Notes: generated by a model from the sequence alone, not told the origin. Numbered from the stretch's first letter, positions 11,582 to 59,277 are shown. The stretch: DNA of 64,000 bases from Malacoraja senta (GCA_038087875.1 CM075981.1:1550001-1614000); one strand, 5' to 3'. Made by a program: numbers and translations.

Positions 11582-11618
11582 ATGTGGATTCCCATTCTTC
11601 TCATCTCCTCGCTGCCGG
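11582..11618 (+). CDS. Gene B exon 1: signal-peptide leader MWIPILLISSLP(G)
   Basis: ATG at 11582, hydrophobic leader, G|GTGAGT phase-1 donor. Joins V1 to give MWIPILLISSLPGAVWA, a typical split CD300/pIgR-type leader. Confidence 0.88.
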
Positions 11619-12548
11619 GTGAGTGAAAGCCAGATCCGGATATTCCAATGATCAATGTTATTTGGGGTCTCATGCACCCTTTCCACAGCAGAGATAGTTA
11701 AGTATGTGTAGACATGTAATGGGGGAGATGCAACTCAGTGCATTGTGGTGATGGATCTGAAATCACATTTGAATATCTAGACTATGTTCGTAGTTTAACC
11801 ACTGTTGACACGGTCTAATTGCATCCTGGTGATAGTTTATAGGCATAAAATAGCAAATGAATTTGGAGCAGATACTCCAAGATACCTGGACCGAAGGACA
11901 GAGGTTACAACATCACCAGGAAGTTAATTCTACACCTTTTAAATGTGTTTACAACTGAGGGGGGGGGGTGGTCGGGATTGTGGACTCATTGTATCAGTTC
12001 AAATATTCCCTGCATTTGTCCAACTCAACTCTGTCGCAAACCCAACAATTCCCCGCAGTCTGAGACTGAACCACTGTTCTCGCTCTATCCACCCACCCCC
12101 AACTCTCTCTCCATCCTCTTTCCAATCCGCAACCCAGTCGCGCTAAAATGCAAGTTCAGGTTATTGTCACGTGTACCGAGGTACAGTGAAAAGCTTTTTG
12201 TTGCGTGCTAATCAGACAGATACATGATTATAATCGATCCTCTTACAGTGCATAGATACATGAAAGGGAAATAAAGTGTAAGGTAAAGCCAGCGAAGTCC
12301 GATCAAGGGTATTCCGAGGGTCACCAAAGAGGTAGATAGTTCAGCACTGCTCTCTGGTTGTGGTAGGATGATACTGATGTGTGAGTGCAACTGGAAAGGA
12401 ACTGTCCCCGAATCTGGCGGTGTGCGTTTTCACGCTAGTAACGCTCTCCGGTAATATACCCGCATTATTGTAACTCGTCCGTCCTCAGTGTCCTCAGTCA
12501 GGGCTTTATAAAGGCAGTGGCGGCGGTGAATGTCTAAACACGGGTCCG

Positions 12549-12762
12549 GCCCAGTGTCGGTTGAGAGATAAATGTTTCCGGGACATCTGGGCACCGCCTG
12601 GGGTTGAATACATCCTTGACAAGTATTGTAACATAGTTGTATAGTTGTTTATTTCGTTTATTTGTTTGTCTTGTATTATGGTGGTGGGTTCTGTTTTGTT
12701 TTATTGTATCGTCAATATTATTTTCAATAATTAAATAAATTATTTGATAATATTTTTTTTTT
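12549..12762 (+). mobile_element. 3' end of a Tx1/L1-type LINE in gene B intron 1; longer copy in gene C at 35581-35827
   Basis: The C copy translates FRGRVGLQGYQALFAGTWGDFRDIWAPPRVEYILDKYCNIVV*, which is Tx1-like at the ORF2 C-terminus. AT-rich 3'UTR and a 13-bp duplication AAACACGGGTCCG. Confidence 0.6.
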
Positions 12763-13192
12763 AAACACGTGTCCGGCCCAGTGTCGGTTGAGAGATGAAT
12801 GTTGGCTGCGCAGCCGGCGGCACCGCCAATTAAATAGCAAAGTGGGGTCTTTCTTTAGGGTGAGAGGCCGGGCACCGCCTGGGATTGTTGGAAGGCAGCT
12901 CCTGCAACACTGCCGCGCTCCCTCAGAACCGCACTGCGATCCCAGCCCAGTTTCTGCTCAGGGATCTGGAGTGGGAAGTGAACCCAAATTGTACTGAGCC
13001 GCGGACAGAACATTGACACAACTGGTACAATAACAGCACTGTCTGCACTTCAGACCGGAGACATTGGTCGTGAAGCAATATGACACATTATGGAACGTTT
13101 TACGTTTTCTTTCATGTAATCTTCAAAATGTATCAATTACCATTAAACAGTTAATTTGCTCTCCATCTGAAAGTTTCTCCGCTCAGTTTCAG

Positions 13193-13507
13193 GTGCAGTG
13201 TGGGCAGAGTGGGAAGTAAAAGGAGTTGTGGGAAGAGAGATCACAATCGATTGTCACTATGCAGCAGAGTACCGCTCACACACAAAATACTGGTGCCGTG
13301 GGAGGAGTCGATCGTGTAGAGTTTTAGTGGAAACAAATGGGCAACACGGACGGAGTGGAAGAGTGTCAATCACAGATAACCCGGCACGAGGAATATTTAT
13401 TGTGACTGTGGAGGATCTTCACTCGGAAGATACAGGATGGTACAGCTGTGGAATTTCAACATCAGCCGACCATCCAATATTTAACGTTTTACTCGAAGTA
13501 TCTGACG
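13193..13507 (+). CDS. Gene B exon 2: Ig V domain V1 (CD300/pIgR-like)
   Basis: tttcAG|GT GCA GTG TGG start and GAC G|GTatgt end; 315 nt, phase 1-1. IDCHY...KYWC...C...RVSITD...TVEDL..EDTGWYSC includes the extra WC...C disulfide of the CD300/pIgR/TREM family. Confidence 0.92.
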
Positions 13508-13846
13508 GTATGTTTCGCAGCGAATGACTTGACGTCTCCAGCAGAAAGACAATACAGGATTACAATCGATCCTCTTACGGTGCATAGATACATGAAAAGG
13601 AAATTACGTTTAGTGTAAGGCGAATCCAGCAAAGTCCGATCAAGGGTAGTCCGAGGGTCATCAAAGAGATAGATAGTTCCGCACTACTCTCTGGATGTGG
13701 TAGGATGATTCAGATGCCTGACAACAGCTGTGAAGAAATTGTCCCCGAATCTGGCGGTGTGCGTGTTCACGCTAGTAACGCTCTCCGGTAAGGGACCTGG
13801 AGGTGGGTGGTGAGTGGGCGAGTGGTGAGTGGGTGAGTGGTTGGGT

Positions 13847-14650
13847 GAGTGGGCAGATGCATGGCAGATGAAGTTTAATGTGGATAAATGTGAGTTTATC
13901 CACTTTAGTAGCAAAATCAGGAAGGCAGATTATTATCTGAATGTTGTCAGGTTGGGAAAAGGGGAAGTACAAAGAGATCTGGGGGTCCTTGTTCATCACT
14001 CACTGAAAGTAAGCATGCAGGTACAGCAGGCAGTGAAGAAAGCTAGTGGCATGTTGACCTTAATAACAAGAGGAGTTGAGTACAGGAGCAAAGAAGTCCT
14101 TCTGCAGTTGTACATGGCCCCAGTGAGACCACACCTGGATTATTGTTTGCAGTTTTGATCTCCAAATTTGAGGAAGGACCTTCTTGCTATCGAGGGAGTG
14201 CAGTGTATGTTGAGGGAGTGCAACAAGGTTAATTCCCGGGATGGCGGGACTGTCATCTGTTGATTGAATGGTGCGGGTGCGCTTGTATACTCAGGAATTT
14301 AGAAGGATGAGATGGGATCTTATTGAAAAATATAAGATTATTAAGGGATTGGACACGCGAGAGGCAGGAAACTTTTCCCCGATATTAAGAATAATGGATA
14401 GGCCATTTAGAACGGAGATGAGGAAAAACGTTTTCACCCAGAGAGTTGTGAATCTGTGGAATCATCTGCCTCAGAAGGCAGTGGGGGCCGATTCACTGGA
14501 TGCATTCAAAAGAGAGTTAGATAGAGCGCTTTGGGCTAGCGGAATCAAGGGGTATGGGGAAAGGCAGGAACGGGGTACTGATTGTGGATGATCAGCCATG
14601 AACACATTGAATAGCGGTGCTGGCTCGAAGGGCTGTATGGCCTACACCTG
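13847..14650 (+). mobile_element. CR1 LINE 3' fragment (reverse transcriptase C-terminus); paralogue at about 37622-38399
   Basis: ORFs 13829..14158 and 14268..14591: W+FNVDKC..HF...QRDLGV.V...RPHL.YC.QF and ...TQRVVNLWN.LP motifs. Confidence 0.88.
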
Positions 14651-15694
14651 CACCTATTGCCTATGTATCTATGTATCTCTTTATCTATGTCTGTATCTAC
14701 AGTTCCTTGTGTCTCCACCTCTGATATTGAAAAGCAAGACCAATCAAATATTCAGCAAGAGAACACTATACCCGTTAGAGTAACTGGGCGCAGTGGTTTC
14801 CTGCTGATTGTTATCGGGTGTTACATTTGTATTTGAAGTGAACCCTACTGATGTTAACGACTCACGAATAGATTTAGGTTCTGTTGAGATAAGGAAATAA
14901 AAGACAATTAAAGATAGACAAAAAAATGCTGGATTAACTCAGCGAGACAGGCAGCATCGCTGGAGAGAATGAATGGGTAACGTTTCGGGTCTGAGCATGG
15001 GTCTCGACCCGAAACGTCAGAGCGAGAGAGTTAGATGGAGCTCTAAAAGATAGCGGCGCTATGGGATATGGTGAGAAGGTAGGAACGGGGTACTGATTGT
15101 GGATAATCAGCCATGATCATAGTGAATGTCGGTGCTGGCTCGAAGGGCCGAATGGCCTACTCCTACCACTGTTGTCTCTTATCTCTTGACCAGCTTTATT
15201 GTAACCCGTCTGTTCTCCGTTCTCAGTCAGGGCTATGTAAAAGCAGTGGCGGCGGTGAATGCCTAAACACGGGTCCGGCCCAGTGTCTGTTGAGAGATGA
15301 ATGTTGGCAGCGTAGCCGGCGGCACCGCCAATGAAATAGCAAAGTGAGGTATTTCTGCAGGGTGAGAGGCCGGGCACCGCCTGGGATTGTTGAAAGGCAG
15401 CTCCTGCAACACTGCCGCGCTCCCTCAGTACCGCACTGCGATCCCAGCCCAGTTTCTGTTCAGGGATCTGGAGTAGGAAGTGAACCCTAATTGTACTGAC
15501 CCGGCGACAGAACACTGACACAACAGGTACAATAACAGCACTGGCTGCACTTCAGACCGGAGACATTGGCCGTGAAGCAATATGACACATCGTGGAACGA
15601 TTTAAGTTTTCTTTCATGTAATCTTCAAAATGTATCTATTTCCATTAAACAGTTCATTTGCTCTCCATCTGAAAGTTTCTCCCCTCCATTTCAG

Positions 15695-16009
15695 CTGCAG
15701 TGTGGGGAGAGACGTATGTAAGAGGAGTTGTGGCAAGAGCGATCACAATCGATTGCCACTATGCAGCAGAGTACCGCTCACACACAAAATACTGGTGCCG
15801 TGTGCAGAGTCGCCAATGTACGGATGTGGTGGACACAAATGGGCAACAAGGACGGAGTGGAAGAGTGTCAATCACCGATAACCCGGCACGAGGAATATTT
15901 ACTTTGACTGTGGAGGATCTTCACTCTGGAGATACAGGATGGTACAGGTGTGGAATTACTACATCTAACGGCCGTCCAATGTTAAACGTAGAACTCCAAG
16001 TATCTGACG
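15695..16009 (+). CDS. Gene B exon 3: Ig V domain V2
   Basis: catttcAG|CT GCA GTG TGG start and GAC G|GTacgt end; 315 nt, phase 1-1, intact V motifs (ORF 15700..16029). Confidence 0.92.
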
Positions 16010-16209
16010 GTACGTTTCGCAGCGATTGACTTGTCGTCTCCACTGAAGTGCCTGATCAATGTATTCTCCGGGAAGGGTCAGGGCAGCACCGATATCCCGA
16101 GGCTCGGCAGCAGTGCAGAGACCTGTGGGGAGCGGGCGGGGGTCGGGAAACCGCACTCATTTTGCTCTCACCCTGTGCGGGGTCTGCCCCATTGAGCGGC
16201 CACCCACTT

Positions 16210-17635
16210 AGAAACATAGAAACATAGAAAATAGGTGCAGGAGGAGGCCATTCGGCCCTTCGAGCCAGCACCGCCATTCATTGCCATCATGGCTGATCGT
16301 CCCCAATCAATAACCTATGCCTGCCTTCTCCCCATATCCCTTGATTACACTACACCCTGGAGCTCTATCTGACTCTCTCTTAAATCCATCCAGTGATTTG
16401 GCCTCCACTGTCCTCTGTGGTAGTGAATGCCACAAATTCACAACTCTCTGGGTGAAAACGTTTTTTCTCACCTCTGCCTTAAATGGCCTCCCCTTTATTC
16501 TAAGACTGTGGCCCCTGGTTCTGGACTCGCCCAACATTGGGAACACTTTTCCTGCATCTAGCTTGTCTAGTTCTTTTATAATTGTATGTCTTTCTATAAG
16601 ATCCCCTCTCATCCTTCTAAACTCCAGTGAATACAAGCCTAGTCTTTTCAATCTCTCCTCATAAGACAGACCCGCCATCCCAGGGATCAATCTCGTGAAC
16701 CTATGCTGCACTGCCTCAATCACAAGGATGTCCTTCCACAATTAGGAGACCAAAACTGTACGCAATACTCCAGATGTGGTCTTTCCAGAGCCCTATACAA
16801 CTGCAGAAGAACCTCTCTACTATATTGAAATCCTCTTGTTATGAAGGCCAAAATTCCATTAGCTTTCTTCACTGCCTGCTGTACCTGCAAGCCAACTTTC
16901 AGTGACCAATGTACAAGGAAATCCAGGTCTCGCTGCGCCACCCCCTTACCTAACCTAACCCCGTTGTGATAATAATCTGCCGCCTTGTTTTTGCCACCAA
17001 AGTGGATAACCTCACATTTATCTATATTATACTTCCACGCATCTGCCCACTCACTCAACCTGTCCTGGTCACCCTGCAACCTCCTAACATCCTCTTCACA
17101 GTTCACACTGCCATCCAGCTTTGTGTCATCCGCAAACTTGCTAGTGTTGCTCCTAATTCCCTCTTCCAAATCATTAATATATATGGTAAACAGTTGCGGC
17201 CCAAACACCGAGCCTTGCGGCACTCCACTCGCCACTGCCTGCCATTCTGAAAAGGACCCGTTCACTCCTACTCTTTACTTCCTGTCTGCCAACCAATTTT
17301 CTATCCACGTCAACACCCTACCCCCAATACCAATCGCTCTAATTTAAGTCACCAGTCTCTCGGGCGGGTCCTTATCAAAGGCTTTCTGAAAGTCTAGATA
17401 TACTACATCCACTGGCACCACTTCATCCATTTTACTTGTCACATCTTCAAAAAATCCAGAAGATTAGTCAAGCATGATTTTCATAAATCCATGCTGACTT
17501 GGACTAATCCTTTTACTGTTATCGAAATGCCCCATTATTACCACTTTAATAATTGACACCAGCATCTTTCCCACCACCGAAGTCAGGCTAACTGGTCTAT
17601 AATTCCCCGTTTTTTCTATCGCTCCTTTTTTGAAA
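16210..17635 (-). mobile_element. CR1 LINE fragment (RT domain to 3' tail)
   Basis: ORFs 16720..17265 and 16307..16741 (GVPQGSV.GP.LF.IYINDL...KFADDTKL). (TTTCTATG)n tail appears as catagaaa repeats at about 16213. Confidence 0.9.
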
Positions 17636-17859
17636 AGTGGAATTTAACTTCTCATTCACTTCACTTTTCACTTAAAGTGGAATGCTCAGCACATTTCCCT
17701 TCCTCTGAACTGTATGAAATGTCACCCTGTCAGAAGTTTGCATTTCGACTCAAACTAATAATCCGACAGATCAGTGAGAAACAAGTGTTGCTCGCGGTCT
17801 GAATACCCCGAGAGTTTAAAAAAATCAGTCCCCAGAGCTCAATAGACTGCGATCAGTCC

Positions 17860-18640
17860 TCCCGTGGTAGGCCATCCCGCTTCCCGCCCCCACCTCAGGG
17901 ATCAGTCATTCCCTCCCAAACCCCGCGCTCTCTCTCTCTCCCTCTGCCCCATCAATGCGCCCCCATCTCCAGCAGCCACCGTCCACCCACCGCCCGGCAG
18001 TCAGCCAACCTCTCCACCCGGACATTTCCCCGGTGTTAAGCAGAATAAACTCATCTTTCACCCCATCAGCCGTCGCACACAACACATAATCCTCCAACAT
18101 TTTCGCCACCTCCAACGGGATCCCACTACTAGACACATCTTTCCATCTACACCGCTATCTGCTTTCCGAAGAGACCGTTCCTTCCGTAACTCCCTGGTCA
18201 ACGTCCATCCCCCCCCCCCCAAAAAAAAACCATCCTCTCCCCAAGTACCTTCCCCGACAACTGCAGGAGATAGATCACCTGTCTCGATACCTCCTTCCTC
18301 TACTCCGTCCAAGGTCTCCAACAATCTTTGCGGGTGAGGATTGACTAGCATCTCCTCCAAGCTCACCTACTACATCCGCTGTTCCAGGTGTGAACTACTG
18401 TATATCGGCGAGACCAAGCGCAGACTCGTCGATCGTTTCGCTGATTAACTCCGCTCAGTCTGCTTCGGCCGACGCTACTTCCCGATTGCTAAACACTTTA
18501 ATTCCCCCTCCCATCCCCAAACTCAACTTTCTGTCCTGGACCTCCTCCACTATCCAACGTAAATAGGAGGAAAAGCACCTGGGAAACTTACAACCCATCG
18601 GTTTGAATATTGACTTCTCTAACTTCAAGGAACCCTTGCT
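17860..18640 (+). mobile_element. Penelope-like element fragment (RT C-terminus/GIY-YIG region); paralogue at about 40690-41390
   Basis: LIFHPISRRTQHIILQHFRHLQRDPTTRHIFPSTPLSAFRRDRS.RNSLV, then TYYIRCSRCELLYIGETKR.L.DRF, a PLE endonuclease signature. Confidence 0.8.
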
Positions 18641-20062
18641 TTACTCCTGTCCCCATCCCGCCACCATCCTAGCTCTCCAGTTAGTTGCACAGTCAAACTG
18701 ATTTTATTTTACTTATTGTATGCCTCGTTGTCACCTTCCCTTCAGCTCACAATGATCCATTGTCCATTTTCTTTTCACCTTTGATCACTTGTTTTCACAC
18801 CTTACCTTTCCATTTATCTTCTGTCTCCCTGTCCCATGATTCTCAGGCTGAAGATGGGTCTCGACAGGAAACGTCACCCATTCCGTCTTTCGAGAGATGC
18901 TGCCTGCTCCGTTGCGTTACTCCAGCATTTTGTGTCTATCTTAAAGGGATCGTAATTCGTTTTCCACAGCAGAGATGGTTAAGTGTGTGTAGACATGTAA
19001 TGGGGGAAATGGAACTCAGTGCATTGTGGTGCTGGATCTGAAATCACACTTGAATATCTACACAATGTTCGTAGTTTAACCACTGTTGACACATGGTCGA
19101 AATACATCCTGACGATAAATGAAAGGCTTAAAATAGCGAATAAATTTGAAGCAGATACTGCAAGACACCTGGACCGAAGGCGAGAGGTTCCAACGTCATC
19201 TGGAAGTTAATTCTACACTTTTAAAATGTGTTTACCAAGGAGGTGGAAGTCAGGATTGTGGACTCATTGTGTCAGTTCAAACATTCCCTGCATTTGTCCA
19301 ACTCAACTCTGTCGCAAACCCAACAATTCCCCGGAGTCTGAGACTGAACCACTGTCCTCGCTCTATCCACCCACCCCCAACTCTCTCCCATCCTCTCTCG
19401 GATCCGTGGCCCAGTCGTGCTGAATTGTCCATGGCGAGCCGGGGTCATTGGGAATAAATCCTGTCCCAGATGAGCAGCGGGACATTGGGCTCACAATTCA
19501 GTTTAGTTTATTATCACGAGTACCGAGGTACAGTGAATCTGGCGATGTGCGTTTTCACGCTAGTAACGCTCTCCAGTAAGGACCCGCTTTATTGTAACCC
19601 GTCCGTACTCAGTCAGGGGGTTGTAAAGGCAGTGGCTGCGGTGAATTTCTAAACACGGGTCCGGCCCAGTGTCGGTTGAGAGATGAATGTTGGCAGCGCC
19701 GAAACTGATATAGCAAAATGGGGTCTTTCTGAAGGGGATAGGCCGGGTATCGCCTGGGATTGTTGATAGGCAGCCCCTGCAACACTGCCGCGCTCCCTCA
19801 GTGCCGCACTGCGATCCCAGCCCACTTTCTGCTGAGGGATCTGGAGTGAGAAGTGAACCCAAATTGTACTGACCAGGGGACAGAACACTGACACAACTGA
19901 TACAATAACAGCACTGCCGCACTTCATACCGGATACATTGGTCGTGAAGCAATATGACACATCATGGAACGATTATGTTTTTCATGTAATCTTCAAAATG
20001 TATCTATTACCATTAAACAGTTCATTTGCTCTCCATCTGAACGTTTTTCCCCTCCATTTCAG

Positions 20063-20377
20063 CTGCAGTATGGGGAGAGAGGAATGTAACAGGTGTTGTG
20101 GGAAGAGCGATCACAATCGATTGTCACTATGCAGCAGATTACCGCTCAAACACAAAATACTGGTGCCGTGGGTGGAGTCGCCAATGTACAGATATGGTGG
20201 AAACAAATGGGCAACACGGACGGAGTGGAAGAGTGTCAATCACAGATATATCGGCACTAAGAATATTTACTGTGACTGTGGAAGATCTTCACTCTGGAGA
20301 TACAGGATGGTACAGGTGTGGAATCACAGCATCCACCGAACATCCATTGTTTCCCGTATATCTCCAGGTATCTGACG
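20063..20377 (+). CDS. Gene B exon 4: Ig V domain V3
   Basis: catttcAG|CT GCA GTA TGG start and GAC G|GTacgt end; 315 nt, phase 1-1. NVT N-glycosylation sequon and intact V motifs. Confidence 0.92.
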
Positions 20378-20699
20378 GTACGTTTCGCAGCGATTGGCTT
20401 CATGTCTCCACTGAAATGCCTGATCCATGTTTTCTCCGGGAAGGGTCAGGGCAGCACCGATATCCCGAGGCTCCGCAGCAGGGCAGAGACCTCCGGGGAG
20501 CGGGCGGGGGTCGGGAAACCCCACTCATGTTTGCTCGCACCCAGTGCGGGCTCTGTCCCACTGAGCGGCCACCCACTTCAAGACACTCAACACATTTCCC
20601 TGCCTCTGAATTGTATGAAATATCACCCTGTCAGAGGTTTGCATTCCGACAAACTAATAACCCGACAGATCAGTGAGAAACAAGTATTGCTCGCCGTCT

Positions 20700-21560
20700 G
20701 AATACCCGGAGAATGATAAACAGGGAATCAGTCCACAGAGCTCAACAGACTGCGTTCAGTCCTCCCGGGGCAGGCCAGCCCGCTTCCCGCCCCCACCTCA
20801 GGGATCAGTCACTCCCTCCCCATCCCGCACACTCTCTCTCTCCCTCTGCCCCGTCAATGCGTCCCCACTGCCAGCAGCCATTGTCCACCCATCGCCCGCC
20901 AGCCAGCCAGCCTCTCCTCCCGGACATTTCCCCGGTCGTAAGCAGAATAAACTCATCTTTCGCCCCATCAGCCGTCGCACACAGCATATAATCCTCCGAC
21001 ATTTGCGCCACCTACAATGGGATGCCACAACTAGCCACATCTTTCTATCTCCATCGCTTTCTGCGTTCCCTCCGCAACTCCCTGGTCAACTCGTCCTCAC
21101 CCCCACCCCACTCCCCACCCCCCACCCCCGTCCCGTTACCTTCCCCTACAACTGCGGGAGATGCAACACCAGTCACTATATATCCCCCCTCTACTCCGTC
21201 CATGGGCCTCAACAGTCTTTTCGGGTGAGGCAGAGGATTCCTTGCATCTCCTCTAACCTCATCTACTCTATCCGCTGTTCCAGATGTGAACAAGCGGATA
21301 TAGTAGATGGGAGACCAAGCGCAGACTCGGCGATCGTTTCGCTGAACAACTCCGCTCAGTCTGCCTCGGCCTACGCTACATCCCGATTGCTAAACACTTT
21401 TATTCCCCCTCCCATTCCCAAACTGATCTTTCCGTCCTGGACCTCCTCCAGTGTCAGAGTGAGGCCAAAGGCAAATTGGAAAAACAGCGCCTCATATTTC
21501 GCTTGGGCAGCTTACAACCCAGCGGTTTGAATATTGACATCTCTAACTTCAAGTAACCCT
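20700..21560 (+). mobile_element. Penelope-like element fragment; paralogue at about 43500-44320
   Basis: ORF 20673..21530 contains LIFRPISRRTQHIILRHLRHLQWDATTSHIF...TFPYNCGRCNT...FRVRQRIPCISSNLIYSIRCSRC. Confidence 0.8.
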
Positions 21561-22802
21561 TGCTTTACTCCTTTCCATCCCGCCCCCATCCGAAACCTCC
21601 AATTAGATTCACCTGATAATATTTTACTGATTGTATGCCTCGTTGTCACCTTCCCTTCAGCTGACAATTATTCATTCTACATTTCCCTTTAACATTGTCA
21701 CCTTTTATCACTTGTTTTAACATCTTACCCTTCCATTTCTCTTCTGTCACCCAGAACATGACTGTCAGGCTGGAGAAGGGTCTCGATCCGAAACTTCACC
21801 CACTCCTTCTCTCGAGAGATGCTGCCTGCTCCGCTGAGTTCCCCCAGCATTTTGTGTCTCTCTTAAAGCGATCGTAATTAGTTTTCGCGATTAAATTACA
21901 AGGCATTGAATTGTGTTTTTGGCACGCTGGTCTTCATCAGTGAGAACATTCAGAATATAATTTGAGATAATATGCTTCAGACGTGCAGATGTTCAGTCCA
22001 CACTTTGGGAATTGTGTTCAGCTTCAGTCACTCAGCTCCAAGAAAATTTGAGATGGACAGCGTGCAGAAAGGTTTTTGGGCGACGTTGCTGGACAGGATG
22101 GGAATGACGCAGGGAGCGATTGGACAAACTCAGACTTCATTCCTTAGTGTGGAAATGATTGAGAGAGGAACTTATAGAAATGTATCAATCACGAGAAGCA
22201 TGTTCATTTTCCCACGATGTGTGGAATCAAAAAGTGGAGGACAGAGGTAATTGGGAACTATTTAAAGAGGGAGGAATAGTAAGGTGCAATTGACCGTAAT
22301 GGCATGTTTTGTACAGATGAGTGGCCGAAGCTGAACACAATTCGCACAAGTTCGACCTCAGCAACATATGTACAACTGAAACATAACATCCCAACATATG
22401 TTCTGAGGGACAACATTTTCCACACATTGGGTAATATGTACATGGAACCTGCTGCCAGGGGAAGTTGTTGAGGCAGTTAGAATAGCAGCATTTAAAATAT
22501 ATTTTGGATATTTGCGTAGATTGGGATCATTGCGAGTGATAAATGAGAAACGCGGACATATGGAAATGTCATAGAAAGACATGTTGGTCGGCATGAATGA
22601 GCTGTTGTGATGGGCATCTTTCGGTTCTCTATAACTCTAATCTTCTTCGATTTATGTGCTTCGCACACTCCCAGAGATGTAGACGAGCCGGTAAGGTATC
22701 AACCGGACGGTTCGGGCTGAGATAAAGTGCTGCTGAGATTTAGCAAGTGTTTGGTTTTTAACCTTTCATACAGGTGACTGAATGTTTGCTCCATTCCCAC
22801 AG

Positions 22803-23123
22803 AACCCTTGTCTGCTCCTGTGCTCAGGTATCTGTCAGCAGCAAATGCCTCACGTCTTGGAGGCTCAGTGTCAGTGTCCTGTGAGTCTCTCCGTGGATCC
22901 CTTCCCATCCATTACACATGGTTTGAGAAGAACGAGCATTGGGTTGCAATGATCTTGAAAGGCAATCAACTGGATCTGAGTTGTGAAATCCTCAGAGGTG
23001 AACACCTTCGATATTACTGCACAGCCTCAAATAATCGTGGGACAAAATCCAGTGAAATAGTCACGGTGAAAGTCTTCAAAGGAGCAGGAACGTGCAGTTA
23101 TGTGACAGAAATGAACAATGCAG
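22803..23123 (+). CDS. Gene B exon 5: Ig C2 domain C2-1 (Fc-receptor-like)
   Basis: cccacAG|AA CCC TTG start and GCA G|GTgagt end; 321 nt, phase 1-1. PVL...GGSVSVSCESLRGSLPIHYTWF...YYCTASN motif typical of FCRL-type C2 domains. Confidence 0.9.
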
Positions 23124-24376
23124 GTGAGTGTTCCTCTCGTGTCCCTGAACCTGCTGCTATTCGCCTTGCGGTAATGTTCATGTATTTCTTGTTATTTGCA
23201 GACGGCATCATTGCAGCCACCGTGAGCTCATGGTGTAAAATGCGAGAGTTTGTTTGGGGGGGACTGGCAAACAATTGCCCGTAGCTTCCACCATGGAGGT
23301 GTTGCGCAATTTCAGCAAAGGAGAGAAAGACATGCACTTGTCACAAAGGGTTGAGTGCACTCCATCAAATTTCTGCCTTCTGCCTTAAAAATGCCGCTTG
23401 GCTGCCGCTTAAGGTCTCACAGTCTCTTTGAGACATTGAAAGCAACCAAATGCATTCTGTTTGGATCCGCCATCATTTACAATCAAGGATGTACAATTTC
23501 ATGATCATGTTCATGATTTTAACTGTTAATTTGTGTTAAACTCCAGTAATATCACTAAATTAAATTGTAATCTACTTGGCCGTCACTCCATCAAGTATAA
23601 CCCTTACTTTTGTCAAAGAGAATTTTGAAATGAACTCCCAGTAGGCGTGGAGACGTTCAGATTGGAAGTCCAGAATAGAGTGTGAATGGTTTACATCAGA
23701 GACACCAAGCTTATACAATGCCAGCGTTTCTTAAACTATTTCAGTGCCATTCACCCTTGAGTCTTTATTACAAGATTTAATTCACCCTCCACTAAATATT
23801 CTTATGTTTTTTTTGGTTATTATCATCTTATTTTCACTTGTGCATAATTTTATATATAATTTATTTTGTCACATGAGCAAAACACATGAATTAACTCATT
23901 CACCCCAAAATAATTTCATTCACCCTTGGGTAAACCATTTATCAGTTTAAGAAGCACTGGCCGAGGCTACAATTTCGCCGAACACTTGTGTTTGGTCTGT
24001 CATGACCCAGAGTCGTACTTGATAGACACCCGGTTGATGCAGAGCAGCAGCAGTTTGCACCATCTGCACGATGCACTGCAGCAACTCACCAAGACTCCCA
24101 AGACATTACCTTCCAATTGCAACAGGCTCCGTGTTCAACGCATCATTCTTCACCATTCACACCCACATTAGCTGGGAAGCGCTTTGGAACGACGTGCAGA
24201 AGGTGAGGGACGGTGTACAGTATCTGTCTCTCATCGCAATCTAGGTGGAATTCAACAGAGTTAAGAAAATCATTGGGCGGACGCCCCTGTATACATTGAT
24301 GTATACTATAATGTATATGTTTGTGAAAGGCTAATTTTGCTCTTCAATCTATGAAAGAATTTTCCTTCAGTTTCAG

Positions 24377-24688
24377 GTGCACTGTGGGCAGAGAGCGAAG
24401 TACGAGGGGTTGTGGGAAGCGCGATCTCAATCGATTGTCACTATGCAGCAGTGTACCGCTCACACACAAAATACTGGTGCCCTGGGACAAGTCGCCAGTG
24501 TAAACATATCGTGGAAACAAATGGGAAACAAGGACAGAGCGGAAGAGTGTCAATCACAGATAACCCGGCACGAGGAATATTTACTGTGACTGTGGAGGAT
24601 CTTCACTCTGGAGATACAGGATGGTACAGATGTGGAATTATTGCACCTGGCGAACCAACATTTAAAGTACATCTCCAAGTATCTGAAG
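24377..24688 (+). CDS. Gene B exon 6: Ig V domain V4
   Basis: tttcAG|GT GCA CTG TGG start and GAA G|GTaggt end; 312 nt, phase 1-1, intact V motifs. Confidence 0.92.
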
Positions 24689-25740: not shown

Positions 25741-25855
25741 TGGATGGGTCAGATTCCAAAATGGCGGCTCTGGCTAAGATACATGGTGGATATTGGCGAG
25801 TGTTTGATTTTCAGATGTTCACTCAGTTGTCTGACTGTTTGCTCCTTTCCCACAG

Positions 25856-36901: not shown

Positions 36902-36970
36902 CAAAATGTATCAATTACCATTAAACAGTTAATTTGCTCTCCATCTGAAAGTTTCTCCGCTCAGTTTCAG

Positions 36971-45884: not shown

Positions 45885-47135
45885 GTGAGTGTTCCTCTCG
45901 TGTCCCTGAACCTGCTGCTATTCACCTTGTGGTGATGTTCATGTATTTCTTGTTATTTGCAGACGGCATCATTGCAGCCACCGTGAGCTCATGGTGTAAA
46001 ATGCGAGAGTTTGTTTGGGAGACTGGCAAATAATTGCCCGTAGCTTCCACCATGGAGGTGTTGAGCAATTTCAGCAAAGGAGAGAAAGACATGCACTTGT
46101 CACAAAGCGTTGAGTGCACTCCATCAAATGTCTGCCTTCTGCCTTAAAAATGCCGCTTGGCTGCCGCTTAAGGTCTCACAGTCACTTTGAGACATTGAAA
46201 GCAACCAAATGCATTCTGTTTGGATCCGCCATCATTTACAATCAAGGATGTACAATGTCATGATCATGTTCATGATTTTAACTGTTAATTTGTGTTAAAC
46301 TCCAGTAATATCACTAAATTAAATTGTAATCTACTTGGCCGTCACTCCATCAAGTATAACCCTTACTTTTGTCAAAGAGAATTTTGAAATGAACTCCCAG
46401 TAGGTGTGGAAACGTTCAGATTGGAAGTCCAGAATAGAGTGTGAATGGTTTACATCAGAGAGACCAAGCTTATACAATGCCAGCGTTTCTTAAACTATTT
46501 CAGTGCCATTCACCCTTGAGTCTTTATTACAATATTTAATTCACCCTCCACCAAATATTCTTATGTTTTTTTTGGTTATTATCATCTTATTTTCACTTGT
46601 GCATAATTTTATATATAATGTATTTTGTCACATGAGCAAAACACATGAATTAACTCATTCACCCCAAAATAATTTCATTCACCCTTGGGTAAACCATTCA
46701 TCAGTTTAAGAAGCACTGGCCGAGGTTACAATTTCGCCGAACACTTGTGTTTGTTCTGTCATGACCCAGAGTCGTACTTGATAGACACCCGGTTGATGCA
46801 GAGCAGCAGCAGTTTGCACCATCTGCACGATGCACTGCAGCAACTCACCAAGACTCCCAAGACATTACCTTCCAATTGCAACAGGCTCCGTGTTCAATGC
46901 ATCATTATTCACCATTCACACCCACATTGGCTGGGAAGCGCTTTGGAACGACGTGCAGATGGTGAGGGACGGTGTACAGTATCTGTCTCTCATCGCAATC
47001 TAGGTGGAATTCAACAGAGTTAAGAAAATCACTGGGCGGACGCCCCTGTATACATTGATGTATACTATAATGTATATGTTTGTGAAAGGCTAATGTTGCT
47101 CTTCAATCTATGAAAGAATTTTCCTTCAGTTTCAG

Positions 47136-47447
47136 GTGCACTGTGGGCAGAGAGCGAAGTACGAGGGGTTGTGGGAAGAGCGATCTCAATCGATTGTCAC
47201 TATGCAGCAGTGTACCGCTCACACACAAAATACTGGTGCCCTGGGACAAGTCGCCAGTGTACACATATAGTGGAAACAAATGGGAAACAAGGACAGAGCG
47301 GTAGAGTGACAATCACAGATAACCCGGCACGAGGAATATTTACTGTGACTGTGGAGGATCTTCACTCTGGAGATACAGGATGGTACAGATGTGGAATTAT
47401 TACACCTGGCGAACCAACATTTAAAGTACATCTCCAAGTATCTGAAG
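47136..47447 (+). CDS. Gene C exon 6: Ig V domain V4
   Basis: Canonical AG/GT, 312 nt, phase 1-1. Confidence 0.92.
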
Positions 47448-48641
47448 GTAGGTTTCTCAGTGAGTGACTTCATGTCTCGACTTTGGCATCTGCATAAAAC
47501 ATTTGTTGGGTCACATATGGGAGTCTGGTGCACAGTTCTGGTCGCCGCTTTATAAAACAAAAGATGTGAAAGGTTTGGAGAGGTTACAGAAAAATGTCAC
47601 CGGGATATTTAGTTGTAGGTTACAAATGCAACATGGAAATGGATCCTTCGGCCCACCGAGTCCACACCGACTAGCGATCACCGGTCACACTGGTTCTATG
47701 TTATTCCACTTTCCCATTCGCTCCCTACACACAATTCTACAATACCGCCATTCTCACACCTCATTAGTGCAACATTATCACTATCAACAATTTTATACAA
47801 GGAAATTAAAAAGTTGTTGATAATGATACTGTTGCACTAACGAAGTGTTTAAATGTTGGTATTGTAGAATTGTGGCAGAGTTTCAGATTAAAAGAAGATT
47901 AACTGCAGATGCTGGAAATATAAAACAAAGATAGATGGTGCTGCTGTGTATTGGTACAGTGGCAGACATGGTAGTTCTGGCAGCTGGGAGGATGGAGAGA
48001 CACAGAGATGTTCAAATCTGATAAATTGTGAGGAGAAGGAGCAGAGAAAACTTACAAGAATGTTGTGATGGCTTGAGGGCCTGACATACAGGGAGGGATT
48101 GAGCAGATTATGACTTTATTTCTTGGTGCGCAGGAGGATGAGGGATGATCTCATGGCAGGTAAAAAATCATGCGAGGAATAGATCGAGTTAATACACAGA
48201 GTCTTTTGCTCAGAGTAGGGGAATCGAGAACCGGAGGACATGGTTTTAATATGAGGGGGGAATGATTTAACAGGAACCTGGGAAAACGTTTTTATACAAA
48301 GGTTGGTAGGCACATGAAACGAACTGCCGACAGAAGTAGTTATGGCAGGTACTATCGTAACATTTAATAAAATATTGGACAGGTACATGAATATGATATG
48401 TTTAGTGGGTTAAGGGCCAAGAAAGGGCAGGTGGAACTCGTGTAGATTGGGCGCGTTGGTCAGTGCAGGCAAGTTAGACCGAAGGGCCTGTTTCTATGCT
48501 GTATGACTATGATTCTATGTAGATGGATGGGTCAGATTCCAACCTGGCGGCTCTGGCTAAGGTACAGAGATGGTGGATATTGGCGAGTGGTTGATTTTCA
48601 GATGTTCACCCAGTGTCTGACAGTTTGCTCCTTACCCACAG

Positions 48642-48962
48642 AACTCGTGTCTGTTCCTGTGCTTGGATTCCTGTCACCAGTCAATGACTCCTGTCTCGGG
48701 GGCTCAGTGACAGTGTCCTGTGAGGCGGTCAGTGGATCACCGCCCATTAGCTACAGTTGGTATGAAAAGACCCTATCTGTGGATTCAAAGATCTCAGACC
48801 AAAATGCCTTGGATCTACATTGTCAATCCTTCAAACACCAGCACCATCAATATTACTGCACTGCCTCCAATATTAATGGAACAAAATCCAGTGAAATGGT
48901 CAACGTGTCCATCTCCAGCAGTGACGTGCCCTGTAGTTTTCTAGTGAAAATCAACGGCACTG
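48642..48962 (+). CDS. Gene C exon 7: Ig C2 domain C2-2
   Basis: cccacAG|AA CTC GTG start and ACT G|GTaagt end; 321 nt, phase 1-1. Confidence 0.9.
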
Positions 48963-50253
48963 GTAAGTAGTGGAGGGAATGAGGAGAAGAAGGGGAAGTG
49001 GGGTGGGGCGGTTTATATGATCACAAGTGATAGAAGCAGAAATAGACCATTCAATCATGGCTGATCTATCTTCACCTCTTCATCCCATTCTCCTGTCTTT
49101 TCCACATAATCCCCGACACCCTGAAATCCATGCACGTTATTTAATGAACATCAATATTAAAATGATAGACTTATGGCCCATTTGTCAATACTTGGTTGCT
49201 GGGCTCCAGGAATAGATTCCCCAGTGCTGGTGTAGGGCAGATTCCTGGCTAGAACCTCGTCTTATGTTTACACAGTTTTTAAACTAGGTTTGCAGTTACA
49301 TCATTCCAAGCACTTTCACTTTCCTGCCATAATCTCCGCATGACCGACACTCAAAAATGGGAAGGGAACAGAAATTATCCGTAAATGTGGCCGCAGTTAA
49401 CTCCTAGACTATATCAGCTTTGGTCCACTGTGTTAATGTTGACCATTCAGCACCATCGATACTAATCCCATTTACCATCCCCTCACCCACACTCTTCTCA
49501 GACTTGACAATTCATGTGTCTTCACCATCTAGGTTTAAAAATATTCCTTGCTCAGATACCCTCCAAATATTCTACTCCTTAACCCAACCCTATGTTCTCC
49601 ACTTCTACACACATCTGCTGTGCTGATTTCCCACAAAGTACCCTATCTATGTTCCTCATAGCTTTACACACCTGTAATAGGTTCCCCCTTCTTTTCCTGT
49701 GTGGATTAAAATCTCCGACTATCCAGCCTCTCCTTCTAACTGTAATGTTTCATCCCAGGCACTACCCCTCGCATGAAATCACCTCCTTTATTTTAATTTA
49801 GAAATCCAGCGTGGAAGCAGCTGCCTTTCACCTGTGCACTAATTCTATCCTACTCACTAGGGACAATTTACAGAAGGCAATTAATCTAAAAACCTGCACG
49901 TCTTTAGAATATGGGAGAAAACCGCAGCACTTGAATAAAACCCACGCGGTCACATGGAGAACATAAACACTCCGTGCAGACAGTACCCGTAGTCAGGATT
50001 GAACTCGGGTCTCCTGCGCTATAAGGCAGCAACTCAACTGGTGGGCCACTGTGCCGCCCTAATGTAGGCAACCTGAGTTGGAACCAGCACTACAGCTTAT
50101 CACGATAACATCTCCCATTTGCTGCAAATTACACTGAAGAAACATTGCCCTGTCAATTAAACCTATAAACTCCTTATATCGGACAAACATGCTCTCTTGT
50201 TCAACTGCAAGTGAAAAGCAGTGAAACTGATTTTTATTTCCTTGTTCCAACAG

Positions 50254-50302
50254 GACTTGAATATTCTTGTGAAACTTCGAAAAGAACCAATTATTCTTCA
50301 AG
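50254..50302 (+). CDS. Gene C exon 8: linker exon (G)LEYSCETSKRTNYSS
   Basis: ttccttgttccaacAG acceptor and AG|GTaaac donor; 49 nt, phase 1 to 2. Confidence 0.8.
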
Positions 50303-50599
50303 GTAAACTACTCTGTTTCCAATGAAAGGTGCCATGTACTAATTGCTGGTGTTTTGATTGGGATTGCTTCAATTTGGAGAAAGTTGTGCCTTCCGTTTAC
50401 TGGCATTAAAGGCCCTTGGGAGTATTGATCTGAATGCACAGTGACACAGCCAGTGGAACCACAGCCTCACAATGCCAAGAACCTGAACTTAGACGCCGTC
50501 TATGTGTGTTCTGCAAATTTCGCCTTTCATTGTGTTGGAAGGTACTGCAGATGCTGGATTAAACTGAATATAGGCACAAAAAATTGAGTATCTCGGCGG

Positions 50600-52304: not shown

Positions 52305-54212
52305 ATATGCACTACGGGCTGAAAAGATGAAGTACGAGGGGAAGCTGGCCAGGAATATAAATAAGGATAGTAAAAGCTTCTTTAGAAAATGTTAAGGGAA
52401 AAATAGTAGCAAAATTAGATGTGGGTCCCTTGAAACCAGACATGGGTGAAATTATTATGGGGAACAAGGAAATGACAGAGGAGTTGAACAGGTACTATGG
52501 ATCTGGCGTCACTAAGGAAGACACAAACAATCTCCCAGAAGTACTGGAGGACAGAGGATCAAAGGGGGTAGAGGAACTGAAATAAATTATCATTAGGCGA
52601 GAAATAGTATTGGCTGGGCTAATGGGACTGAAGGATGATAAATCCCCTGGGCATGATGGTCTGCATCCCAGGGTCCTCAGGGAGGTGGCTCTAGAAATAG
52701 TGGATGCATTGGTGATCATTTTCGAATGTTCAATAGATTCAGGATCAGTTCCTGTGGATTGGATGATAGCTAATGTTATCCCACTTTTCAAGAAAGGAGC
52801 GAGCGGGAAAACGGGGAATTACCGACCAGTTAGCCTGGCTTTGGTGGTGGGAAAGATGTTGGAGTCAATCATTAAAGAGGTAATAATGGGGCATTTGGAT
52901 AGCAGTAAAATGATTAGTCCAAGTCAGCATGGATTTATGAAAGGAAAATCACGCTTGACTAATCTTCTGGAATGGTTTGAGGATGTGACAAGTAAAATGG
53001 ATGAAGGGCAGCCAGTGGATGTAGTGTCACTAGACGTTCAGAAAGCCTTTGATAGGTCTCGCATGGGAGACTGGTGACTAAAATTAGAGCACATGGTACT
53101 GGTAGGGTGTTGACGTGGATAGAAAATTGGTTGGCAGACAGGAATCAAAGCGCAGGAGTGAACGGGTCCTTTTCAGAATGGCATGCAGTGGCGAGTGGAG
53201 TGCCGCAAGCCTCGGTGTTGGGGCCGCAACTGTTTACCATATATATTAATGAGTTGGAAGAGGAAATTAGGAGCAACACTAGCAAGTTTGCGGATGACAC
53301 AAAGCTAGGTGGCAGTGTGAACTGTGAAGAGGATGTTAGGAGGTTGCAGGGTGACCTGGACAGGTTGAGTGTGTGGGCAGATGCGTGGCAGATGCAGTAT
53401 AATATAGATAAATGTGAGGTTATCCACTTTGGTGGCAAAAAAAAGGGGGCAGATTATTATCTCAATGGGGTTAGGTTAGGTAAGGGGGAGGAACAGCGAG
53501 ACCTGTGTGTCCTTGTACACCGGTCACTGAAAGTTGGCGTCCAGGTACAGCAGGCAGTGAAGAAAGCTAACAAGAGGATTTCAGTATAGGAGTAGAGTGG
53601 TTCTTCTGCAGTTGTATAGGGCTCTGTTAAGACCACATCTGGAGTATTGTGTACAGTTTTGGTCTCCTAATTTGAGAAAGGTCATCCTTGTGATTGAGGC
53701 AGTCCAGCGTAGGTTCACGAGATTGATCCCTGGGATGGCGGGACTGTCTTATGAGGAAAGATTGAAAAGACTAGGCTTGTATTCACTGGAGTTTAGAAGG
53801 ATGAGGGGGTATCTTATAGAAACATTTTTAAAGACTGGACAAGCTAGATGCAGGTAAAATGTTCCCAATGTTGGGCGAGTCCAGAACCAGGGGGCCACAG
53901 TCTTAGAATAAAGCAGAGGCCATTTAAGACTGAGGTGAGAAAAAACGTTTTCACCCAGTCAGTTGTGAATTTGTGGAATTTCCTGCACAAAGGACAGTGG
54001 AGGCCAAATCACTGGATGGATTTAAGAGAGAGTTAGATAGAGCTCTAGGGGCTAGTGGAACCAAGGGATATGGGGAGAAGGCAGGCATGGGTTATTGAGT
54101 GGTGGCGTTCAGCCATGATCTCAATGAATGGCGGTGCAATGATAGGGCCGAATGACCTCCTCCTGCACCTATTTTCTATGTTTCTATGTTTCCATGTTTC
54201 TATGTTTCTATA
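52305..54212 (+). mobile_element. About 1.9-kb CR1 LINE fragment in the intron before the gene C TM exon
   Basis: ORFs 52610..53077, 53074..53589 and 53597..53857 (KSPGHDGLHPRVLRE...NYRPVSL...GVPQ.SVLGP...KFADDTKL), with a (TTTCTATG)n tail. It splits sequence that is contiguous in gene B at about 27960-28170. Confidence 0.92.
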
Positions 54213-55110: not shown

Positions 55111-55119
55111 TAAATTAAC

Positions 55120-56264: not shown

Positions 56265-56407
56265 GCCAAGAAGCAATGATGAGCCATACCTCACCCTTCC
56301 CTATTCTCTGTCCGACAGGATCACTTACATAGTTGCGTCTGGTGTCACTGTGCTTCTCCTGATTCTCATCATTGCCTTCTTTTGGTACCGAAAGCGTAAA
56401 ACCAAGG
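56265..56407 (+). CDS. Gene C exon 9: stalk plus uncharged TM, (R)PRSNDEPYLTLPYSLSDRITYIVASGVTVLLLILIIAFFWYRKRKTK
   Basis: ttttgttctttactgaAG acceptor, phase 2 matching the linker exon. About 21-aa hydrophobic helix followed by RKRK stop-transfer. G|GTGAGT donor, phase 1. Confidence 0.88.
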
Positions 56408-58536
56408 GTGAGTTTCTGACTTCCCTTAAATAATTTCACAATACATGTCTCAGTTCCTTCCAGAATGTCAAGAGATTTAATTCTGATCTAATCAACAAAT
56501 GCCCTGCATTAAAGTAATAAAGTGTTGGAGGAAGTATGGATGATCAATAATGCTATCACGTTTGATGCTATCATGGTGACTCGGTGACAAAAACTGTTCT
56601 TTTAACATCATTGTACTTAAACTGTCTGAGTGTGAAATGGCAGAGATGCGTGAGAAATAAGAGGCTAGGTAGAAGTAAGATTTACATCGATACTCTCATC
56701 CTCTCAGCTGTTAGAATATGCTTCGTGTGATTAGCTGTTGTATTTCAAATCAGATTAAGTCGTGTTTATTGTCACATGCACAAGCATGGTGAAGTACAGT
56801 TACAATGAAGATCACACCTGCAGCCTCACAGGGACATAGACAACATACACATACCTGCCTCACACAGAGGGCGGTGGGTATATGACAGGAGCTGCCAGAG
56901 GAGGTAGTTGAGGCAGGGCAGGTCTAGCCTGGACAGATAATCCAAGAAGTGAACACCCATGAACTTGAAGCTGCCAACTATCTCAACCGCCGATGAAAAT
57001 GTGAAAGTCACTGAGCTGTTCCTCAGTCAGAGAGCATTAGTGGAAAGTAAAACAGTCAACATTTCAGATCCAAGACCCATTACAACAGTGTAAGAGGGAA
57101 AAGAGGGGGGAACCTCAATTGAAAGATCAAATAGTGAAAGGCCTAGATATAGTGGATGTAGAATGGATGCTTCCATTAGTGGGAGAGTCTAGGACCAGAG
57201 ATCATAACTTCAGAATTAAAGGACATTCCTTTATGATGGAGATGAGGAAGAATTTAATTCGTCAGAGGGTGATGAATCTGTGGAATTCTTTGCCAAAGAT
57301 GGCTGTGGAGCCCGTCAATAGATATTTTTAAGGCATAGATAGATTCTTGATTCGTACAGGTGTCCTGGATTATGGAGGGAAGGCAGGAAAAAGAGGTTAG
57401 GAGGGAGAGATAGATGACCCATGATTAAATGGCGGAGTAGATGGATGGGCTGCATAGATTAATTCTACTCTTATCGCTTATGAACTTATGAAAACCTTTT
57501 TAAGCAGATTAGGTTAGGGTGTGGACACAAAATGCTGGAGTAACTGAGTGAAACAAGCAGCATCTCTGGAGAGAAGTAATGTGTGATGTTTTAGGTCGAA
57601 ACTCTTTTTCAGACTGATGTCAGGCGAGTGGCAGTTCTGAGATAAAGTATAGTCGGAGACAGTAAGACTGGTCAGAGACCTGCGAAGGGGGAGTGGATGG
57701 AGGGAGGGAAAGCAAGGGCTGCTTGAAGTTAGAGAAGTCAATGTACATACCGCTGGGGTGTAACCAGCCCAAGGATATATGAGGTGCTGTTTCTCCAATT
57801 TGTGCTGGGCCTCACTCTGACAATGGATGAGGCCCAGGACAGAATGGTTAGTGTGGGAATGGGAGGAGGAGTTAAAGTGTTGATCAACCGGGAGATCAGG
57901 TAGGTTTAGGCAGCTTTAGGGTGGGATGGGGTAGAGTACAGGGAATATGATCCATTCTGAACATTACGTACAGTAACCAAAACAACAGGGCAGATTCTTA
58001 CTCCGTACGTGCAAATATACTGCAGTGCTTTTGGGGTTCTCCTAAATATAAGGTCGTGGCAACAACACGTGTGTTGGAAGGAACTGCAGATGGTGGTTTA
58101 CACTGAAGATAAACATAAAATGCTCTAGCAATTAGCGGGTCAGGGGCGACATTTTGCCAGCAGCGCAACAGAAAATCATCAAATATAGTGGTTTTCAGCT
58201 TAGCTGGATAAAAGAAACAGATTGAGTATGTGTGTATGTGTATATATACACACTGAACTTTTTTTTCTCTCCCGTTATGTACTATGTCTACATATTCTGT
58301 TGTGCTGCAGCAAGTAAGATTGTCATTGTTCTATCTGGGACATGTGACAATAAAACTCTCTTGACTCTTGTAAAGGAACAGTTGACGTTTCGAGGCGAGA
58401 CCCTTCTTCAGACTGAGAGTCAGGTGAAAGGGAAACAAGAGATATATAAGTTACATGAAACAAATGAATGAAATATATGAATGAATGATGTTTAAACCTG
58501 TTCATAATATGGCTCTATCGACAACATATTTTCCAG

Positions 58537-58583
58537 AATCCAAGTGCAATACATCACACGGTGAAGACAACAATGAAATCCAG
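58537..58583 (+). CDS. Gene C exon 10: cytoplasmic exon whose donor is GG instead of GT
   Basis: Identical coding sequence to 30-76, but followed by GGaaaa (58584-58585) where gene A has GTaaaa. Confidence 0.7.
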
Positions 58584-59001
58584 GGAAAAATGTGAAATAT
58601 AAATTCTCTGAGTGATGAAATATATATAACATTGAATTATCTGTGTTTACACAGGCCATTTAGCAACACCAGTCCACTCCAGTTAAGAGACCCAGCACAG
58701 AAACAGGCCCTTTGGCCCACCGAGTCCACGCCGACCGGTGACCCACGCACACAAAAACTATCCTACGCACACTAGGGACAATTTGCAAGTATGCCAAACC
58801 AATTAACCTACAAACATGTTGTAGGCACTGTCAGGCAACAACTCTACCGCTGCTCCACCATGCTGCGCTATCTTTGTGTTGTAAACAGCAGCAATGGCCT
58901 GTTCTGTACACTGAACAGTTTGAGACCTACTTTGTAATAGACATCTGTTGAGGACCTTTCAAATCTATTAGGTTGTAAAATTGGATTTTGTTATATTTTA
59001 G

Positions 59002-59277
59002 GAAATGGCAGTGTTGGAAGGGAACCACGTTGATGCAAATCTACAGCAAATTGGAAACAACAGGGCAGCTGACCATTTGGATAACAATGAAGGTGGAATC
59101 ACGTATGCAGTGGTGAAATGTCAAAGGAAGTCGAGATCAATGCACCCTGAGACTCACAACACTGTTCTCTACGCAGATGTTAATTTTCATCGCAACTGCC
59201 CAAAGGGCAATCGGAAACCCCACTCTACTAGGGCTCCAGAGAACTCTGAAACAATTTATGCCTCTGTTGTTTCTTAG
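59002..59277 (+). CDS. Gene C exon 11: cytoplasmic tail with ITIMs (ITYAVV, VLYADV) and an ITSM (TIYASV)
   Basis: ttatattttAG acceptor, phase 0, open to TAG at 59275-59277. The summed exons give 2451 nt, or 816 aa plus stop. Confidence 0.85.
   Translation, partial: EMAVLEGNHVDANLQQIGNNRAADHLDNNEGGITYAVVKCQRKSRSMHPETHNTVLYADVNFHRNCPKGNRKPHSTRAPENSETIYASVVS

Follow-up and report, generated by a model that had tools for sequence, protein, structure and literature searches.

Adjacent skate genes with a near-identical ectodomain and different signalling ends, members of the modular domain immune-type receptor family

In the genome of the skate Malacoraja senta, two neighbouring genes start as nearly the same receptor and end as different ones. 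They lie in a window of 64,000 nucleotides (nt; GCA_038087875.1 CM075981.1:1550001-1614000, one strand), by which we mean the whole stretch of DNA that was analysed, and are called gene B and gene C here. A sequence-only reading of this window had taken them for a pair of activating and inhibitory receptors with six immunoglobulin (Ig) domains each, which raises the question of what family they belong to, whether both signalling ends are usable, and whether such a pair is new. We consider it probable, at roughly 80%, that B and C are adjacent, recently duplicated members of the skate modular domain immune-type receptor (MDIR) family, and that a single ectodomain cassette was combined in them with two distinct signalling modules that are older. 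This reading is based on comparison of the two genes with each other and with their relatives.

The shared ectodomain of genes B and C

When the window was compared with itself, positions 11000-27445 (B) and 34045-50538 (C) were colinear, with 94-98% nt identity including the introns and 81% in the last block, after which the similarity stops. The weighted nt identity was 94.5% over the colinear alignment of ~15.3 kb, and by this comparison B and C are a tandem duplication.

Exons were placed by open frame, AG/GT boundaries and phase, and every exon shared by B and C has both the boundaries and the open frame. Along the plus strand, both genes begin with a leader exon of 37 nt and continue with Ig exons, four of the V type (312-321 nt) and two of the C2 type (321 nt), before a linker exon of 49 nt. 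Exon 1 of B (11582-11618), which carries the ATG and leader (MWIPILLISSLP) and ends in a phase-1 GTGAGT donor, is 100% identical to exon 1 of C (34624-34660; 37/37 nt). It is followed in B and C, respectively, by V1 (13187-13507 and 36965-37285; 98.4% nt identity), V2 (15695-16009 and 38516-38830; 94.9%), V3 (20063-20377 and 42833-43147; 91.1%, the most diverged Ig exon), C2a (22803-23123 and 45564-45884; 97.5%), V4 (24371-24688 and 47130-47447; 98.1%), C2b (25856-26176 and 48642-48962; 93.5%) and the linker (27160-27208, GHEYSCENSITSNYSA, and 50254-50302, GLEYSCETSKRTNYSS; 83.7%). The identical leader and the near-identical V-V-V-C2-V-C2-linker exons of the sequence-only reading are thus borne out.

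Over the ectodomain, 604 of 661 amino acids (aa) are identical (91.4%), and the overall ratio of nonsynonymous to synonymous substitution (dN/dS) between B and C is 0.58, with V2, V3 and the linker having the largest numbers of differences. A smooth gradient of identity towards the membrane was considered and rejected; the pattern is a mosaic, with V1 at 98%, V3 at 91%, V4 at 98%, C2b at 93.5% and the linker at 84%.

Pfam assigned the four V exons to V-set and the other two to C2-like domains (Ig_C17orf99/Ig_2/Ig_3). The V1 match and the structural match of C2a were made with the C copies. Against solved structures in the PDB, the best match of the V exon was pIgR, with an E value of 1.8e-58 over four domains, followed by CD300 (E ~1e-19), NKp44 and TREM2, and C2a matched FCRL5 (E 1.2e-35). 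The C linker was located by mapping of homologues.

Beyond the linker, the transmembrane (TM) and tail exons of B bear no resemblance to those of C, as had been noticed from the sequence alone. Adjoining genes with near-identical ectodomains (91.4% aa, ~94.5% nt) and different signalling ends are the arrangement that characterises paired receptors.

Family membership and the two signalling ends

In protein searches, the V1 exon found its best matches exclusively in skates, rays and sharks, and the closest of them in Rajidae (Rhinoraja longicauda, Leucoraja erinacea and Amblyraja radiata). The window's own protein was not among the protein-search matches, and M. senta apparently has no annotated proteins in the collection. 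The named neighbours in these searches were 'Modular domain immune-type receptor' 2, 3 and 5 of Rostroraja eglanteria (UniRef entries), with MDIR5 (P0190) and MDIR3 (P0170) as the nearest named proteins. B is 77.3-77.7% identical in aa to MDIR5 over ~498 columns and 85.5% identical over linker, TM and tail. The corresponding identity of C to MDIR3 is 70-76%, with BLASTP giving 76.3% over 696 aa, and rises to 81.7% in the 3' module. Full-length relationship to these cloned proteins places both genes in the MDIR family; judged by identity, B belongs to the MDIR5 type and C to the MDIR3 type, so that the paired-receptor signature and the MDIR lead of the sequence-only reading both stand. Across their common ectodomain, MDIR3 and MDIR5 have 81% identity to each other; therefore the pairing was already present in the published sequences.

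The family was described by Cannon et al. 2006 (Immunogenetics 58:362, pmid 16738934), and PMC3031540, in the part that cites this cDNA work, presents it as a multigene family that includes basic-TM forms and forms whose tails carry ITIMs (immunoreceptor tyrosine-based inhibitory motifs). Both features are found here. The ectodomain combines two Ig module types, one pIgR/CD300/TREM-like and one FcR-homologue-like, and the 64 kb hold two 3' ends of ITIM type besides one gene with an arginine (Arg) in its TM and the remains of one B-type gene.

B and C are thus not a novel kind of receptor, as the family and its activating and inhibitory forms have been known since 2006, and for the same reason a specialist would be little surprised by them. 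What is new is specific: the V-V-V-C2-V-C2 domain order, the direct adjacency of B and C, and the exact exon maps, which supply genomic exon models for an MDIR5-type/MDIR3-type pair. By a crude motif count, this domain order was found in none of the relatives checked, which read V-C2-V-C2, V-V-C2-V-C2 or V-C2-V-C2-V-C2. The one Rhinoraja longicauda locus compared (L001, 36 kb) holds tandem B-type genes and no C-type tail, and is uninformative on the B-C adjacency. The suggestion that the pair might be undescribed is therefore true in a weak sense, for domain order and adjacency; it fails for the family and for the Arg-TM and ITIM forms.

The 3' end of B depends on the small linker exon, whose acceptor side shows a good polypyrimidine tract plus AG and whose donor is GTAAAC; it encodes a peptide that also occurs in MDIR5. 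Its 49 nt shift the phase from 1 to 2 and so set the reading frame of the TM exon; the Arg-TM frame is reached only through the linker. The TM exon (29504-29594, YISWNVGRWLFFLLLVLWSISTAVFTRGCK) then reads YISWNVGRWLFF..., with the Arg near the outer end of the helix, confirming the Arg-containing TM that had been noticed in B. Of the 227 elasmobranch proteins retrieved, 43 have the Arg-TM frame, and the Arg is invariant at its column in all 43 homologous TM segments found by BLASTP in skates, rays and sharks, mostly in short-tailed proteins, where it sits in a block, W-x-V-x-R-W-x-x-F-x-L-L, conserved between sharks and rays.

MDIR5, which uses the Arg-TM frame, ends in ...GHEYSCENPITSSYSASYISWKVGRWLLFLLLVIWSISTAVFTRGSKKRDESEPRHSAHELQ, and this tail locates the true last coding exon of B at 30213-30260 (RRDESEPRHSTHELE followed by the stop TGA; compare KRDESEPRHSAHELQ at the end of MDIR5), behind the acceptor ...tcttttgcag and upstream of AATAAA signals at 30644 and 30661. 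A terminal exon that ends at 30763, which the sequence-only reading had preferred together with a tail of ~23 aa, lies downstream of both signals, has no homologue support and was rejected. The tail of B has 20 residues (TRGCKRRDESEPRHSTHELE) and no tyrosine. A basic TM residue (VGRWLFF...) with a short, motif-less tail is what is expected of an activating member.

With these exons B encodes 711 aa and C would encode 802 aa if its exon 10 is spliced, in place of the 713 and 816 aa estimated earlier. The length of B assumes the upstream acceptors at V1 and V4, where tandem acceptors 6 nt apart (cag-TTT-cag) occur in both genes (13187/13193 and 24371/24377 in B, 36965/36971 and 47130/47136 in C). 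The upstream acceptor reproduces the VSGA... junction of MDIR3 and MDIR5, and the downstream one would lose two residues.

The 3' exons of C were obtained by mapping a Rhinoraja longicauda protein (P0003) and MDIR3 onto the window. The TM exon (56319-56407, ITYIVASGVTVLLLILIIAFFWYRKRKTK) has no charged residue in its helix. It is followed by a 47-nt cytoplasmic exon 10 (58537-58583, ESKCNTSHGEDNNEIQ) and by the last exon (59002-59277), which encodes two ITIMs (ITYAVV and VLYADV), an immunoreceptor tyrosine-based switch motif (ITSM; TIYASV) and the stop, in a 3' module that is 82% identical in MDIR3. All three motif positions are kept in MDIR3 and conserved in other skate models. As the MDIR3 and MDIR5 proteins contain the linker, the TM frame and both tails between them, there is homology support for every 3' junction.

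The cassette of B and C consists of a leader, six Ig domains (four V domains like those of pIgR and CD300, and two FCRL-like C2 domains) and a linker with Cys. If expressed, B, with its MDIR5-type module of invariant-Arg TM and short tail, would most likely signal or reach the surface through an adaptor with an acidic TM and an ITAM (immunoreceptor tyrosine-based activation motif) that docks on the Arg, by analogy with known receptors, and would be activating. C-type proteins, with the MDIR3-type module, would be inhibitory, as their phosphorylated ITIMs and ITSM would recruit SH2-domain phosphatases, and would oppose B on the same putative ligand.

Intactness of the pair and alternative explanations

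Against an activating B opposed by an inhibitory C stand the splice donor of C exon 10, the position and surroundings of the Arg in B, and a 2014 survey of sharks. The original MDIR paper is also said to have listed MDIR5 among the forms without obvious signalling motifs.

The donor of C exon 10 (58584-58585) is GG in the assembly, so that the exon ends CAG|GG, compared with CAG|GT in a 95% identical copy that belongs to a third gene, A. Gene A is an ITIM-type gene upstream of B, of which the window holds the 3' end on the plus strand, and its tail matches that of C. Read-through of C exon 10 gives ...EIQGKM and a stop, skipping it gives ...KTKGNGSVGREPR and a stop, and inspection by eye found no frame-restoring cryptic GT donor near exon 10. 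The ITIM/ITSM tail of C is therefore unreachable in frame in the assembly. Exon 10 of gene A (30-76) has its intact GT donor, and its last exon (495-777) carries a 7-nt duplication, at about 548-554, that brings a stop before the ITIMs (...IGNNKQQGS-stop) and leaves these in the +1 frame. Thus both ITIM tails in the window are interrupted in the assembly, by different lesions, and from the sequence only B looks fully intact. The neutral TM, the two ITIMs and the ITSM that had been noticed in C are all present; the reading of C as an intact inhibitory gene meets a splice-donor lesion in this assembly.

Decay is also seen elsewhere in the cluster. What remains of one B-type (MDIR5-type) gene, a relic at 6957-8763 (plus strand) between A and B, has lost the C2b, linker and TM exons; its V4-like exon (7621-7926), in which the acceptor has changed from CAG to CAT and the 3' end is cut, is fused directly to a 90% copy of the B tail exon (8152-8199) and 3' untranslated region. 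It is a serious possibility, to which we give somewhat less than even odds, that this haplotype has no working inhibitory partner at all, and that C and A are disarmed or decaying members of a birth-and-death cluster in which B alone is signalling-competent within the window. The contrast between the donors of C and A, the early stops that follow both read-through and skipping in C, the stop in the last exon of A, and the large internal deletion of the relic, which shows that gene decay occurs in the cluster, all fit this explanation.

Against it, C is otherwise intact, with a last exon that is open and keeps all three tyrosine motifs, and reads from the species do not repeat the lesions. Two sequencing runs (X1 and X2) covered introns at even depth and contained no splice joints, which identifies them as DNA from whole-genome shotgun (WGS) sequencing, not RNA. 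Over 58450-59350 both runs gave only T at 58585, which is a GT donor, and a last-exon contig with two A-type substitutions and no indel; the contigs used (Logan) drop minor variants. The species therefore possesses an intact MDIR3-type tail, and the donor change of C and the 7-nt duplication of A may be private alleles or assembly errors. The rebuttal has its limit, since the T-bearing contig of X1 carries the letters of gene A at neighbouring variant sites and that of X2 ends before those sites, so that the GT is found on an A-like haplotype and is not thereby assignable to C itself.

Near the TM exon of B (29474-29553), the same WGS contigs hold minor variants at about one third of the depth. 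One is 29501 C>T; the other, 29511 T>G, changes the peptide to the YIAW found in R. longicauda. A different B-type paralogue or allele is their probable source.

A second explanation accepts the B protein as we model it and questions its sign. The Arg could be a juxtamembrane charge of the stop-transfer kind, which would make B a signalling-neutral or decoy receptor. It lies at the very edge of the hydrophobic stretch, where it is residue 3 of the best hydrophobic window of 19 residues. B reads N-V-G-R at the N-terminal end of the TM, in agreement with the NxxR that marks FcR-gamma-coupled receptors (PMC2413239); however, the Asn is found in only 5 of the 43 homologues, Lys being the commonest residue. 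In addition, a 2014 survey reports no homologues of FcR-gamma, pIgR or FcRL in sharks (PMC4016189). The pIgR and FcRL part of that statement fits poorly with the V and C2 matches described above, which agree with the earlier MDIR work. On the other side, the Arg is invariant inside its conserved block, which is more conservation than a simple flanking charge would need, and its N-terminal position is exactly that of the FcR-gamma-coupled receptors (PMC2413239). We regard a neutral B as unlikely and continue to read it as the probable activating member.

The Arg-TM would be unused if B were mainly soluble or frame-shifted through skipping of the linker. This would follow the Gnomon models of Leucoraja erinacea (P0004) and Amblyraja radiata (P0005), which skip the 49-nt exon and join C2b directly to the TM exon, and consequently read the Arg-TM exon out of frame, with a VTSHGKWGAGC..SCL ending; without the linker, the TM exon of B would read VTSHGMWGAGC.... 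However, MDIR5, which goes back to clearnose-skate cDNA work, includes both the linker and the Arg-TM frame, the same frame recurs in the 43 predicted elasmobranch proteins, where it is conserved as a hydrophobic helix, and the linker of B has the good splice signals already described. The alternative frame was therefore rejected as the main product, and skipping as the rule in B appears quite improbable.

These models bear on the earlier suspicion that the small exons of this locus are mis-annotated, which applies to the relatives. They flag a systematic annotation error in skate genomes, in which the linker is skipped, the Arg-TM is misread and the genes are mislabelled. Names across the family are inconsistent and include 'polymeric immunoglobulin receptor-like', 'Fc receptor-like 5'/FCRL5, 'CXADR-like', CMRF35-like and 'TRIM69-like'. 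A 'TRIM69-like' RefSeq model (among P0004, P0005 and P0057, the last from Rhinoraja longicauda) has N-terminal TRIM-type RING/B-box Pfam domains, ends as a B-type MDIR and gives the impression of a fusion of two genes.

That the tandem pair is an assembly artefact, with two haplotypes or collapsed paralogues misplaced side by side, is barely credible despite the high identity of the copies and the WGS contigs without C-specific letters at 58585-58691, as the window has no runs of N, the ~5% divergence with many intron indels far exceeds the 0.3-0.5% between WGS contigs and assembly, and the copies have their own upstream regions and entirely different, homologue-supported 3' modules.

The array extends on both sides of the pair, because the first 4.8 kb of the window are a 95% identical repeat of the 4.8 kb from C exon 10 onwards. 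The opening 28 residues of the A. radiata model P0005, which are followed in that model by the segment immediately upstream of the leader ATG, have matches at 4228-4311 and 62733-62816; these might represent a further 5' exon, lying upstream, of B and of the gene that follows C. Reverse-transcriptase-like open reading frames with a FADD motif lie in intron 3 of B (16307-17265, minus strand) and in introns 3 (38989-40089, minus strand) and 8 (52610-53857, plus strand) of C, and related retroelement fragments are scattered through the window.

Comparison with known receptor systems

The closest known systems are the MDIR proteins of the clearnose skate (Rostroraja/Raja eglanteria), with which the comparison outlined in the sequence-only reading gave the identities reported above (77.3-77.7% for B, 76.3% for C). 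MDIR5 shares with B the leader, the V and C2 types, the Cys linker (GHEYSCEN...), the TM (...SYISW.VGRWL.FLLLV.WSISTAVFTRG..) and the tail (.RDESEPRHS.HEL.). It differs in having four Ig domains (V-C2-V-C2) instead of six, and it belongs to another species and is not an orthologue by its level of identity. MDIR3 shares with C the uncharged TM (...ITYI..SGVTVLLLILIIAFFWYRKRKTK) and a three-exon tail with ITYAVV, V.YADV and.IYASV. It differs in having five Ig domains (V-V-C2-V-C2) instead of six, and the penultimate exon of C has the GG donor in the assembly. A tandem-duplicated ectodomain cassette joined to two older signalling modules is the route by which paired receptors are thought to originate.

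Mammalian and amphibian paired receptors with an N-terminal TM Arg are, like B and C, encoded by adjoining genes with near-identical ectodomains, of which one has an Arg in the outer part of its TM and a short tail and the other has ITIMs. Receptors that couple to FcR-gamma through such an Arg include LILRA2, PIR-A, NKp46, GPVI, OSCAR, Fc-alpha-R and Xenopus XFL TM1 (PMC2413239). Unlike B and C, these families have unrelated, C2-only ectodomains, and their Asn is not conserved in MDIR5-type TMs; adaptor coupling in B is proposed by analogy. The MDIR5-type TM, with its W-x-V-x-R-W-x-x-F-x-L-L block from sharks to skates, could be the cartilaginous-fish counterpart of the FcR-gamma-type docking helix, with ITIM partners being lost repeatedly and independently while the Arg-TM copy stays intact, although we would call this speculative and rather doubtful. 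If it were true, pIgR-like V/FcRL-like C2 receptors that couple to ITAM adaptors would be older than bony fish, which would contradict the 2014 survey, and ITIM loss (the donor change in C, the 7-nt duplication in A) beside an intact Arg-TM would be the pattern expected from a pathogen-driven shift from inhibitory to activating receptors.

The V domains of B and C are of the same type as those of pIgR and CD300/CMRF35. A true pIgR has a V-only ectodomain and a transcytosis-type cytoplasmic tail, with neither ITIM nor Arg-TM modules. Identity with pIgR was therefore rejected for B and C, in which two FCRL5-like C2 domains are interleaved and the tails are of MDIR5 or ITIM type. CD300 has a single V domain, whereas B and C interleave four V domains with FCRL5-like C2 domains, and they add further sequence evidence for pIgR-like V and FcRL-like C2 domains in cartilaginous fish.

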